Below, one piece after another: positions 16,732 to 33,380 of a stretch of 64,000 nt of DNA (the first letter of the stretch is position 1; every line of letters begins with the position of its first letter). The translations under genes were made by a program, and so were the position numbers. Origin of the DNA: Macrostomum lignano (taxonomy: Eukaryota); the NCBI GenBank assembly GCA_002269645.1, contig NIVC01000416.1, positions 496,001-560,000 on the forward strand, read 5' to 3'. The notes beneath the pieces were generated by a model. That model ran no database searches. It saw nothing but the letters and a program-made list of their open reading frames with translations, and was not told the DNA's origin.

Positions 16732-19700
16732 ATGCTCTGCCTCTGGTTACTGTGGACATGCAGCATCCTGCTTGGGTAAGCAAATAACATTTTAACAATA
16801 TTTTACCGAAACAAATATTAAAGAAAAAGAGAAATCAAGTGACTAGTAATTATTCATTTAAGATTAAAAACTGGGTAAACTGCTACCTGAGTTTAAGGCT
16901 TTTGAAGATACAAATACTCTATCAACTAAAATGACTTGTCCCTTGTCGTCTTCCTAAAAAACTAAATTAGATTAGAAGACCTGGGGTCGTTCTATTAAGC
17001 CATCGTAAGATAAGATCGTTCTTAGCTCCTATCTCCGCTGTGTAAAAGTTCCGACGTACGATCAAACTTGTGCTTCGACAGCTTTATAGTACTACCTAGG
17101 GATTGCAATCCGGGGATCCCGGGATCCCGAAATCCCGGGACTAATTTTTGCTATTATTTTTGCAAAAAGTGTTGTAATATGAGCATAATTAGGCCCACAA
17201 CTAGTTTATTATACTGCGCTAATTTCCGTTAATTGCCTCACGTCGCGTGGCGCCTTTTTAAACCCCACTTCACAGATTTAAATTTGAAATTTCGCCAATG
17301 AAAATTTTGATATATGATTTGCTTCTTTACTACTAATTCGTACTTTTATACTACTTACTTAAATCCGTCACAAGATAATGCTGTTTTTTATCTACAAACA
17401 GATCATTATCTCTATAGCAATCGAAAAATGGAGGCAAAAAACATTTAGCGCATTTTTTGCCTTAAAATTTCAGCTCAGAAGCTTAAATAGCTTTCTGATC
17501 CCGGAATTTTGCAATCCCTAGTACTACCCCAGGGTCTCTAAGGGGCGCTAGAACCAAGGGGCGCCAGCTATTAGACTTTTTTTTTACGATTTGCTACTTC
17601 CGTCTCAAGTAAATTCAGTATGCACGCTAAGAAAATCAACACCAAACCTTTCGCAGTGCTGAGGCCGTTCATTACTACTGCGGCAAATACGGCATGGCTG
17701 TCAACATGACTGACCAGTCTGGGCCCGTTGACCACCTCATCCTCCCGTGGGAAGAGGGCCGAAAGAATTTACCCAAGATCCTCAGCTGCAAATGGCAGTT
17801 CATCGGTAGATTCAGTAGGAATGTAATCCTGCTCCTGAGAGGATTCGACACTGAAAACGTGGACCTGAGTCTCCGACGAGTGGTGCGATCGGCTGAGCAT
17901 TCTAGTCTGACAGCCGGAAGAATTCGGTACAGGTTCCTGCCTTATGAATGTGAGTCATGCAAGTTATAGTTTATTAACTTGCTTGGGATCGACAGACAGA
18001 CAGACAGGCAGACAGACTGACAGACAGACAAACAGACAGACAGACAGACAGACAGACAGACAGACAGACTGACAGACAGACAGACAGACAGACAGACAGA
18101 CAGACAGACAGACAGACAGACAGACAGACAGACAGACAGACAGACAGACAGACAGACAGACAGACAGACAGACAGACAAACAGACAGACAGACAGACAGA
18201 CAGACAGACAGACAGACAGACAGACAGACAGACAGACAGACAGTCAGACAGTCGGAAAGACAGACAGACAGACAGACAGACAGACAGACAGACAGACAGA
18301 CAGACAGACAGACACACAGACAGACAGACACACAGACAGACAGACAGACAGACAGACAGACAGACAGACAGTCAGACAGTCGGAAAGACAGACAGACAGA
18401 CAGACAGACAGACAGACAGACAGACAGACAGACAGACAGTCAGACAGTCGGAAAGACAGACAGACAGACAGACAGACAGACAGACAGACAGACAGACAGA
18501 CAGACAGACAGACAGACAGACACACAGACAGACAGACAGACAGACAGACAGACAGACAGACAGACAGACAGACAGACAGACAGACAGACAGACAGACACA
18601 CAGACACACAGACAGACAGACAGACAGACAGACAGACAGACATTCAATAATTTCAGACTATGTCAGTGGCAGCTGCTCAGCTCAAGCTGTTCAAGGCTGG
18701 CAATCCGTGGAACTGACGACACTTCGTGTTCTGCAGCTGCCAAGAGGGTTTAAATTAATTTGCTTTGACTTTAACAAACTGGATTTATTATTTGGCTTTT
18801 CATTTTCTGATTGAACTGACCAAATTTTTTATCATATTTACTTGAAAGGTTTAATTGTACCTGCAGCGGCGGATTTAGGGGACGTGGAGGGCAAAGAGAA
18901 TATACGAGCGTACAAGCAGCCCGTGAACGCTCGTGTTCACACATGTTCACGTGTTAACAAGCACACACATTTCTAACATTTAAAACATTTGCAAAGTTTA
19001 GACCATGCATCTGTACTATTCCACTCCTTAGGAGCAATTTATCTGTCGAGTTCGACACGAGCTCCAGTGGATATCCGAAAGACACACCGGGTCTGCGAAT
19101 CCAGCTGATGGAGCCGGAATTCTGCAGCAAGGACGTTGTCTACTTTGAGCACAGCTGCTACACAATCTCATCGGCTCGGAGGTCGCTGAAAGCAGAGCTG
19201 ACTGCAATCTGCAGCGATGGAGGACTCGCACAGCTGGCCACTTTTAACAGCTCCAGCGCTCTGCAGAACTTTGTGGAAAAAAGTAAGCTGCCATGGTTAT
19301 AAGTGGCTGAGGATTGCATGATTACGCAATTTGACTCAAACTCTGTCGATGACCTTTTCAGGCCAGCGGACCCTGGTTGGAACCGGTCTGAAAGTCAACA
19401 GCAAAACTCCGCTCAATCTCACACAGCCAGTTCGCATCGGGCTTCTGCACGATCGACTGACTGGCTCCATTTTCTACCTGAGCAACTCAAAGGGCGAACT
19501 CGAGTTAAAGCCGCTTGTCGACTCCAGTAATCTGTGAGTATTTTCTCTATAGTCTTGCTCTCCATCAGGTGCCAGTCATAAATTGCTCGTGTTTCTTAAC
19601 TGCAGCTACTACAATGTCCGACCTACGAGCTCGAGATTCTCGTGCGGCTCCCTCAGACTTGCTCAGACAGCCGATGGCACCGAGGTGTCCTTCGGAGTCG

Positions 19701-20125
19701 TCGAGTTTGTCAGCTGCAGCGAGTCGCTGCCGGCGCTGCTCAGCTTTCGAGACACCGCCAGAAACTGCTGCTGCGGCTGCAGCGCTAGAGCTGTGCTCAG
19801 CCAGATTGAAAGTGCGGACTCTCAAGCTACACCTAGTGAGACGCCACCCAGTTCAGCAGCTAGTGTGACTCCAAGTGGGACATCCAGTACAAAAACTACT
19901 GCATCGCATCGATTTGAAACTACCAAGGCTGAGAAAGTCACACCGCCATCTGACTCTACCGATGCTTGTCGGAAGTCAACTGATGTTTCTAAGAGGGAGA
20001 GCTACAATTTCTTTATTCCGTTTGTAATTGTGCTCATCCTGCTTGTACTGGTGATCAATGTATTTCAAATCCTCGTAAATCTACATAGTATCTTACGAGC
20101 GTATTTTGCATATCCAGGCAACTAA
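16732..20125 (+). CDS. Receptor paralog 1: signal peptide, CUB-like, C-type-lectin-like, S/T stalk, TM, short tail (about 455 aa, 6 exons)
   Basis: Manual exons 16732-16775, 17657-17949, 18657-18747, 19032-19282, 19362-19533, 19606-20125; GT-AG with compatible phases (the donor at 18748 is weak, GTTTAA). Peptides [87 protein letters not shown]. Confidence 0.75.
17097..17520. mobile_element. hAT-type MITE in intron 1 of paralog 1
   Basis: TIRs TAGGGATTGCAA / TTGCAATCCCTA and a perfect 8-bp TSD GTACTACC (17089-17096, 17521-17528). Confidence 0.85.
17991..18642 (+). repeat. (CAGA)n microsatellite, about 650 bp, intron 2 of paralog 1
   Basis: Direct observation; source of the SVCL artefact ORFs. 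Confidence 0.97.
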
Positions 20126-32900: not shown

Positions 32901-33380
32901 TCAAATTTCAGTTTCTACAGAGTGCTGTCACCGAATCGCGCTGTGTCGTGTGGCTCGTTGAAAATTGCCGTTGAAAATTGTGGCTCGTATCAGCATAGCA
33001 CTGGCGCTTTGTTAGAATTTATCGAATTCGGAGACTGCGCAGAACCACTTCCCGCGCTGATTAGCTTCTCAGATGCTGAATTCAAAATTATCTGCAACAA
33101 CTGCAGTTCAATTTTTCGCGACTGGATGAAAGCGAAACAAATGACAATAAAAGAAAAATCCGGCACACGTACAAAGCCAAAATCAAGGGCCTCGGCTCGG
33201 TCGCCGATACCGAGACACGAACCCGCGTCTACGGGTTCAGATTCATTCGTTTTTAAAGTGATTGTTCTCTCAGTGGTTCTCTTAGTGTTATCTGTGTTTT
33301 ATTTGTTGCTGTTTCCGAGGAAATTCAGAAGCATTCACGGCTTCCATGGTTGCTCTGTGGCTTATTTTCATTGTTGTTAG
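29958..33380 (+). CDS. Receptor paralog 3: signal peptide, CUB-like, C-type-lectin-like, TM, short tail (about 445 aa)
   Basis: Manual exons 29958-30004, 30071-30387, 30496-30577, 30660-30913, 32658-32826, 32912-33380, with the same intron phases as paralogs 1 and 2. Peptides MLIFGVVLVLGYFVIGANAGLYFC, LDCQWEFLFN..IIVLSAF, GNKLSVIFKQS..GLKIQLMEPGFC..YWNGNCY, TM FVFKVIVLSVVLLVLSVFYLLLF. Confidence 0.75.
32100..32420 (-). pseudogene. Crypton-like (DUF3504-associated tyrosine-recombinase family) fragment
   Basis: The minus strand reads VDGYVPEATKKKSAWMIKTFMEW..ELHEMNKSDLTVFLKF, then after a frameshift FVLEVRRK. This resembles the N-terminal region of Crypton/ZMYM-like proteins as recalled from memory; stops are present. 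Confidence 0.45.

Follow-up and report, generated by a model that had tools for sequence, protein, structure and literature searches.

What are the three neighbouring genes that lie in tandem on contig NIVC01000416.1 of the flatworm Macrostomum lignano, and that, judged from their sequences, cannot be assigned to any named, characterised gene or known family? We analysed the 64,000-nucleotide stretch from position 496,001 to 560,000 of this contig (assembly GCA_002269645.1), hereafter the window, in whose own numbering the genes, G1, G2 and G3, occupy positions 16732-33380 of the forward strand. Their nearest database entries are uncharacterised proteins of the same species, and a preliminary description of this DNA, made from its letters, had likewise found no gene name to give them. 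We think it likely that G1-G3 are tandem paralogues of a family, confined to Macrostomum, of type I single-pass membrane glycoproteins whose recognition head combines a CUB-like domain with a non-classical domain of the C-type-lectin-like kind (CTLD).

The gene models were rebuilt by three-frame translation of the raw sequence and reading of the junctions. Each of the three genes is complete, with six exons that form a single open frame from ATG to stop, intron phases of 2,1,2,1,2 and GT-AG splice sites at all junctions, such that the 18 exons all keep the frame. The cluster begins with the ATG of G1 and ends with the stop codon of G3. The preliminary description had proposed these same coordinates, exon numbers and phases for a tandem cluster of three diverged paralogues, and all of this is borne out. 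Pairwise identity among the three proteins is 32-40%, and their paralogy is real because BLASTP E-values of 5e-55 to 4e-80 are beyond chance. The motifs quoted in that description are also all present and aligned in the three proteins (YFC/YYC, C-x-W-x-F, GL[RK]IQLMEP-x-x-C, CY, QLA[ST]FNSS, RIG, CGSL and C-x-E-x-LPAL[LI]SF). No fourth copy of the gene family was found in the window by tblastn.

A few details of the models deserve mention. The donor of G1 intron 3 (GTTTAA) is weak, and an alternative 43-nucleotide intron beginning near 20083 may give G1 a protein end reading ...VFQIL-ATKLLFL before the stop, like that of database protein P0015; the G1 tail is very short under both readings of its 3' end. 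An open reading frame (ORF) at 26592-26765 ('LGLGDRLAIHY...') had been a candidate for a G2 exon bearing the WIGL motif. It was dropped because the six-exon chain closes in frame without it, and the true third exon (GW.TV..TL..) is found in all three genes. G1 intron 2 consists mostly of a (GACA)n microsatellite of 163 units (17991-18642), the source of long 'CLSV' and 'DRQT' pseudo-ORFs.

Both its predicted fold and a distant sequence relationship establish the second domain as a CTLD, as had been proposed. A profile built from seven close members gave 17 weak matches to the PDB, every one of them a CTLD. When 15 diverse members were used, the profile gave 86 PDB matches at E<=10, and 59 of the 60 matches listed are CTLDs. 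The best are CD69 (E 1.5e-6), DC-SIGNR (7e-6) and DC-SIGN (4e-5), with 17 sequences at E<1e-4. These alignments run from the first hairpin cysteine through 'AQLASF.S..E', which is the start of the domain, and thus cover only its N-terminal third. AlphaFold2 yielded a confident two-domain model, with a mean predicted local distance difference test score (pLDDT) of 85.7 and a predicted template-modelling (TM) score (pTM) of 0.86. With this model as the query, Foldseek returned 65 PDB matches at E<=1e-3, and chains containing a CTLD account for 46 of the best 50. For single-domain CTLD targets among the matches listed, the Foldseek probability is 1.00 and the target-normalised TM score is 0.55-0.71; the CTLD matches include langerin, the mannose receptor, LOX-1, Mincle, NKp80, DC-SIGNR and NKR-P1B.

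Within this domain the family conserves the two cysteines of the hairpin, Y172 and L-A-x-F. The same holds for R-x-G-x-F, together with R-I-G-L, where WIGL would stand, for C2 and C3, and for L308 and F311, which belong to the last core strand. Between 95% and 100% of family members keep the hairpin cysteines (C160-C171) as well as C284 and C301, the C2-C3 pair. According to the sequence alignments, the C1 cysteine occurs only in G1-type proteins, and in place of C4 there are one to four cysteines shortly after the LPALISF strand. The 'LASF' segment, which had been read as the LASI-S helix of long-form CTLDs, is a beta-strand in the predicted model.

The alignments do agree with the earlier statement that no Ca2+/sugar motif is visible. 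EPN/QPD and WND motifs are absent at the homologous positions in G1-G3 and their relatives: the three genes read ESA, RPT and LSP before the CGSL cysteine, where EPN or QPD would stand, and EF-x-(N/D/S) at the WND position. Because neither position is conserved, domain 2 is classed as a non-classical CTLD that lacks the canonical Ca2+/sugar site.

The first domain is predicted in the confident model as a ten-strand beta-sandwich. Among the best 50 Foldseek matches of that model, the only ones that are not CTLDs are neuropilin-1, neuropilin-2 and GPR126, at probabilities of 0.87-0.96; CUB is the sole domain type common to the three proteins. An initial AlphaFold model, built from 13 rows, reached a pLDDT of 47 with only domain 1 reasonably folded, and serves as a secondary check. 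Near the top of its matches are the CUB domains of a spermadhesin (first), Neto2, meteorin, neuropilin, C1r and MASP-1, with single-domain TM scores of 0.48-0.57. All of these fold matches come from whole two-domain models rather than from domain 1 alone. In the family alignment the first CUB cysteine pair is conserved (C8 and C48, then W50), at a spacing of 40 residues versus 27 in domain a1 of neuropilin. Domain 1 is the more variable module across the family, with column entropies of 2.25/2.64 against 1.78/1.97 for domain 2. Its last strand, GL(R/K)IQLMEP, is strongly conserved and runs directly into the first cysteine of the CTLD.

For the remainder of the protein, Kyte-Doolittle hydropathy and glycosylation sites support the plan of a type I membrane glycoprotein with a single pass. 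Toward the C-terminus all three proteins have one strong hydrophobic segment (in the range of residues 384-441, with a mean of 2.5-3.2 over 19 residues), which agrees with the single-pass receptor topology claimed earlier. A signal-like hydrophobic segment at the N-terminus exceeds the threshold in G1 and G3, and the N-terminus of G2 is hydrophobic and falls below it. Between four and eight N-glycosylation sequons are present per protein. The cytoplasmic tails are not conserved among G1-G3 and their relatives, and tail length varies across the whole family. At its end the G2 tail has an acidic YxxI motif, which might act in endocytosis or as a signal resembling the hemITAM (hemi-immunoreceptor tyrosine-based activation motif).

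Inside domain 1, each of the three proteins carries a multibasic loop, a motif also found in P0003, P0004, P0006 and P0010. The loop corresponds to residues 76-83 of the confident model, the sole segment with a pLDDT below 50. Its R-x-x-R followed by serine fits the minimal proprotein-convertase consensus, such that cleavage at this site is possible.

How far does this family extend? Word-seeded searches of 5.8 billion proteins gave matches solely from M. lignano. A scan of 1.84 billion cluster representatives with a hidden Markov model yielded 32 family clusters at E<=1e-3, and the ten distant cluster members that were looked up are all from this species. No member looked up came from another species. 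The closest relatives of G1 are P0003, P0010 and P0015, the last of which equals the C-terminal half of G1 up to a few residues from its end. A fourth subfamily comprises P0004 and P0006-P0009, and the best database relative of G3 is 36% identical to it. P0001 (BOX15_Mlig022098g1) is 90% identical to G2 overall at the protein level. By tblastn it matches G2 at 98-100% over exons 1, 2 and 4, and the lower value for exon 3 (92.6%) arises because that match runs past the exon ends; in DNA, exons 1-4 of the two genes are 99-100% identical. The GenBank models P0001 and P0003 derive from an RNA-seq-based transcriptome annotation (PMC5730564), and P0001 and G2 are colinear across each of the five junctions. 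This gives indirect transcript support for the exon chain of G2 and looser support for that of G1. Automatic database names are erratic for this family: at least ten members are called 'CUB domain-containing' in UniProt, and in UniRef the names of P0021, P0025, P0026, P0038, P0041 and P0042 invoke ZP, PAZ, MHD, Ricin B or collagen NC1 domains. Because these names contradict one another, they were left out as domain evidence.

The genes for P0003 and P0001 stand in the same order as G1 and G2 at a duplicate locus, NIVC01000494.1:473048-497390 of assembly Mlig_3_7, here called L001. Window segments 19044-28036 and 34422-41044 align to L001 at 94-97%, and the published assembly is highly redundant, with large duplicated blocks (PMC5730564). 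To judge from the alignment, the two loci could be alleles, homeologues or assembly duplicates. Their divergence is patchy, in the manner of a mosaic. In G1 the 5' half (exons 1-3 with their introns, 16732-19044) is essentially unalignable to L001, where only 111 nucleotides of exon 2 align, at 78%, and the exon 2 products share about 57% identity. Exons 1-5 of G2 are almost identical to their counterparts (synonymous divergence, dS, of 0.02), whereas in the last 100 codons (27600-27938), which encode the stalk, membrane helix and tail, dS reaches 0.39 and non-synonymous divergence (dN) 0.17. The parts adjoining these two blocks differ by 1-4%. Approximately 6.1 kb that include G3 (28282-34422) are replaced in L001 by about 2.6 kb of unrelated sequence (L001 14865-17516), so that an entire family member is present at one locus and absent from the other. 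Such a pattern suggests that gene blocks have been exchanged between diverged copies.

The preliminary description had called the family fast-evolving, and this finds no support in the comparison of the two loci: dN/dS is 0.24-0.55 in all alignable blocks, which indicates constraint. Since both synonymous and non-synonymous rates go up where the local divergence is large, these differences have the look of block replacement or gene conversion rather than of positive selection. Exons 4 and 5 of G1 are more diverged from L001 than the neighbouring short introns are (p=0.017), with a dN/dS of 0.24-0.36. Positive selection on these exons was rejected as a cause because the differences decay with distance from a breakpoint near 19044, as at the edge of a replaced block. 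Taken together, the alignments point to diverged copies that are moderately constrained and have undergone block replacement or gene conversion, with no demonstrable positive selection.

Several results weigh against the interpretation of G1-G3 as membrane receptors with a CUB-like and a CTLD module. For the second domain, Pfam Lectin_C (PF00059) has no match at E<=10 in G1-G3 or in any of 34 family members; across fragments, full-length proteins and the 34 members, Pfam gave noise only, from the stalk and transmembrane region (Endomucin, TMEM154). The protein that was modelled is not the window protein itself. It is the ectodomain of P0001, which differs from G2 at about 6 of 334 positions, with the window exons added as extra rows, and the 34 rows of the alignment come from a single species. 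G3 has no annotated counterpart or transcript-based model among its database relatives. For the first domain the sequence methods are blank: Pfam CUB (PF00431) has no match at E<=10 in G1-G3 or the 34 members, the domain 1 profile has no PDB match at E<=10, and hhalign against four neuropilin CUB domains gives a probability of 1.4%, which is no significant relationship. Chance matches of a domain 1 profile to an SRS antigen and a mitoribosomal protein were dismissed. Furthermore, part of the fold evidence comes from the low-confidence model, which also matches the C-domain of Clostridium perfringens enterotoxin, PliG and Cry toxin domains at similar scores.

These results on domain 1 raise the question of whether it is related to CUB at all, or is a beta-sandwich whose resemblance is merely topological. 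This alternative is somewhat unlikely, though it has real weight. Besides the empty sequence searches, it draws on the near-equal scores of the enterotoxin, PliG and Cry domains, on the wider spacing of the first cysteine pair, and on the family alignment, in which the second CUB disulfide (C3-C4) has no equivalent. Countering it, the non-CTLD matches in the best 50 of the confident model share nothing except CUB, and the sole segment aligned by hhalign places the C-x-W of domain 1 in register with C-E-W-L-I of CUB. The CUB-like first domain of the preliminary description is thus retained at the level of fold and lost at the level of sequence. Because the sequence methods are blank and only the first disulfide pair is present, with wider spacing, we do not file domain 1 as a member of the CUB family; calling it CUB-like by its predicted fold is reasonable but weaker than the assignment of domain 2.

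Doubt of a different kind attaches to function. The immune or cell-recognition role proposed earlier was speculative, and the tests that were run lend it no support. The proteins might instead serve adhesion or recognition in reproduction, acting between sperm and egg or in epithelia or glands, with the variation in copy number and gene blocks reflecting sexual or lineage-specific selection. The restriction of the family to one lineage, the presence/absence and block differences between the duplicate loci, and the CUB-bearing spermadhesins at the top of the matches to the low-confidence model all fit this proposal, and reproduction-related genes are reported to evolve quickly in Macrostomum (PMC7336406). 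Opposed to it are the dN/dS values below 1 and a failure to find the gene identifiers (Mlig022098 and five others) in the M. lignano literature text and supplements searched, including reproduction-related ones, which also counts against the receptor reading. We judge this proposal unlikely.

If the locus has been duplicated recently, then might these genes simply be decaying? The copies would be products of the recent M. lignano genome duplication, intact in appearance yet redundant or partly disabled rather than working receptors. A 353-bp difference at the transmembrane-coding end of G1 (window 20065) removes the 80-residue cytoplasmic tail of P0003, and the TAA of G2 at 27936-27938 stands where P0001 has a glutamine codon and reads on for 43 residues. 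Both changes could mean that copies are losing function, a further point against the receptor reading, and the absence of G3 from the duplicate locus and the annotation, in an assembly of such redundancy, would be explained as well. On the other hand, frame and splice sites are kept in 18 of 18 exons, all family-wide invariant residues are retained in G1, G2 and G3, and dN/dS is not close to 1; a short tail may also be a normal variant in a family in which tail length varies. Decay is therefore quite unlikely. Finally, it is very improbable that G1-G3 are classical Ca2+-dependent carbohydrate-binding lectins serving as pattern-recognition receptors for microbial glycans, because a CTLD fold with DC-SIGN, DC-SIGNR, langerin and Mincle besides CD69 among its best matches is offset by unconserved residues at the EPN/QPD and WND sites and by profile alignments confined to the N-terminal third of the domain.

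The receptor reading can be placed among known systems. The vertebrate non-classical CTLD receptors of Drickamer group V (CD69, NKR-P1, NKp80 and LOX-1) share with G1-G3 a long-form CTLD with an N-terminal cysteine hairpin, a membrane anchor and the absence of an EPN/QPD/WND Ca2+-sugar site, and they supply the best sequence match and good fold matches to domain 2. They differ in being type II proteins, usually dimers, with a C-terminal CTLD, whereas in the type I proteins G1-G3 a CUB-like domain precedes it. Judged from the cysteines, a C1-C4 disulfide of G1-G3 would lie away from its canonical place, and the sequence relationship is distant, below Pfam detection. Layilin, chondrolectin and the CD93/thrombomodulin group resemble G1-G3 as type I, single-CTLD proteins with a signal peptide, an N-terminal ectodomain that includes the CTLD, one transmembrane helix and a short tail. 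In none of them is a CUB-like domain known to precede the CTLD, and the database searches detected no orthology of G1-G3 to layilin-type proteins.

CTLD and CUB domains do occur together in C. elegans CLEC proteins (CLEC-4, CLEC-41 or CLEC-42, for example), which belong to a large lineage-specific expansion with tandem paralogues (PMC8051790). These proteins are secreted, often contain two domains of each kind and are seen by standard domain models. In contrast, G1-G3 are membrane-bound, each has a single CUB-like domain and, invariably after it, a single CTLD, and both domains escape Pfam. With the CUB domains of neuropilins, Neto1/2, GPR126 and spermadhesins, domain 1 has in common a fold-level likeness, the first cysteine pair and C-x-W. 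It is without the second disulfide, the Ca2+-binding residues or significant sequence similarity, and it has a disordered basic loop of about 20 residues inserted. A fixed head of CUB-like domain and CTLD on a type I anchor was found neither among the matched solved structures nor in the literature searched.

Table 1. Gene models, domains and segments of G1-G3 in window coordinates; domain and membrane assignments are predictions.
Feature	Positions	Strand	Size or residues	Basis and remarks
G1 exons	16732-16775, 17657-17949, 18657-18747, 19032-19282, 19362-19533, 19606-20125	+	456 aa	Rebuilt exon chain
G2 exons	23699-23769, 24268-24581, 25438-25513, 26231-26478, 27166-27340, 27431-27938	+	463 aa	Rebuilt exon chain
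G3 exons	29958-30004, 30071-30387, 30496-30577, 30660-30913, 32658-32826, 32912-33380	+	445 aa	Rebuilt exon chain
G1 domain 1, CUB-like	17658..19116	+	aa 16-171	Exon 2, exon 3 and start of exon 4; last strand GLRIQLMEP
G2 domain 1, CUB-like	24269..26312	+	aa 25-181	Alignment, model, Foldseek
G3 domain 1, CUB-like	30072..30747	+	aa 17-178	Alignment
G1 multibasic loop RRVVR|S, inside domain 1	17874..17891	+		Alignment
G2 multibasic loop RQRLGR|S, inside domain 1	24497..24517	+		Alignment and model
G3 multibasic loop RKRVIR|S, inside domain 1	30300..30320	+		Alignment
G1 domain 2, CTLD	19117..19800 (end approximate)	+	aa 172-~349	Rest of exon 4, exon 5 and start of exon 6; C..D..YF...CY hairpin
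G2 domain 2, CTLD	26313..27600 (end approximate)	+	aa 182-~351	Profile, model, Foldseek
G3 domain 2, CTLD	30748..33110 (end approximate)	+	aa 179-~356	Alignments
G1 transmembrane segment	20009..20074	+		Hydropathy; then a tail of only 7-16 aa
G2 transmembrane segment AIALATLAFLLLVAALVL	27699..27752	+		Hydropathy; then a 61-aa tail ending ...GESDIYDSI
G3 transmembrane segment FVFKVIVLSVVLLVLSVFYLLLF	33246..33314	+		Hydropathy; then a 21-aa tail ending ...HCC

The surroundings of the cluster are eukaryotic DNA rich in tandem arrays. At least ten further arrays with units of 13-46 bp, some of them several kilobases long, lie in the window (372-8056, 10890-11720, 20574-21151, 40219-41296, 43581-45387, 46085-47246, 48556-49881, 50526-52031 and 55293-55787), and, when reversed, the 23-bp arrays at 372-2306 and 3751-8056 are similar both to the end of L001 and to the 24-bp array at 40.2-41.3 kb. 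Directly upstream of G1, at about 13400-16350 (+), is a frameshifted retrotransposon of the non-LTR (long terminal repeat) class, with an endonuclease/exonuclease/phosphatase ORF, an RVT_1 (reverse transcriptase) ORF and a G+C content of up to 65%. Downstream, 36999-40050 (+) holds an apparent gene for a single-pass membrane protein with a transmembrane segment and a proline-rich tail, whose ORFs have no Pfam match. Over 57 residues, one of these ORFs shares 58% identity with the C-terminal portion of P0012, a chimeric model that starts with fragments of the fourth CUB-like/CTLD subfamily; through this likeness the neighbourhood seems conserved at a paralogous locus. On the reverse strand are an ORF with a Ras-association (RA) domain that is RASSF-like (45392-46000), an LYR-motif (Complex1_LYR) ORF below the Pfam cut-off (57574-57876) and a 433-residue ORF without a Pfam match (53929-55230).

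How might such receptors work? We hypothesize that a signal peptide is followed by the CUB-like beta-sandwich of about 150 residues, the GL(R/K)IQLMEP strand and a long-form CTLD of about 170 residues, and then by a stalk rich in Ser, Thr and Pro, one transmembrane helix and, in the cytoplasm, a short tail that is not conserved. The CUB-like module and the CTLD would form one rigid recognition head, which is suggested by the high pTM and by the strong conservation of the strand that leads directly into the CTLD. This head could bind its ligand without the classical Ca2+-sugar mechanism, as do the CTLDs of natural killer cell receptors, CD69 and LOX-1, and a protein or complex glycoconjugate would be a likelier ligand than a simple sugar. 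Because variation is greater in the CUB-like module than in the conserved CTLD core, the specificity of each paralogue is probably set mainly by domain 1 and the CTLD loops. Given that the tails are unconserved, and that two are truncated in the window copy, signalling would need a partner protein, or else the receptors may act solely through binding, adhesion or uptake. Candidate roles are immunity, recognition between cells or gametes, and adhesion.

The observations could also be joined into a larger picture, which we regard as highly doubtful in its entirety. In this scheme, Macrostomum would have a recognition system of its own that varies between genome copies, with a conserved CTLD scaffold bearing an exchangeable CUB-like 'head', and with copies that differ in entire 5' or 3' blocks of genes and in complete genes, G3 for one. 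Its members would mature by convertase cleavage at R-x-x-R|S in domain 1, and some would signal by the acidic YxxI tail in the manner of the hemITAM of CLEC-2 and Dectin-1. If true, a flatworm could use a system of this kind to tell self from non-self, or to recognise pathogens or gametes. To our knowledge, no such receptor family has been described from flatworms.

At the level of annotation, where this finding lies, G1-G3 demonstrate how two modules can be too diverged for standard methods, with the CTLD missed entirely. Recognition of that CTLD gives a set of 'hypothetical proteins' a biochemical frame that can be tested. The block-wise differences between the duplicated loci offer a small but concrete case of how receptor genes may part ways once a genome has recently been duplicated. 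Little is known of the recognition receptors of flatworms, and M. lignano, a model capable of transgenesis, probably possesses its own expanded group of membrane proteins in which two ancient extracellular modules are combined.

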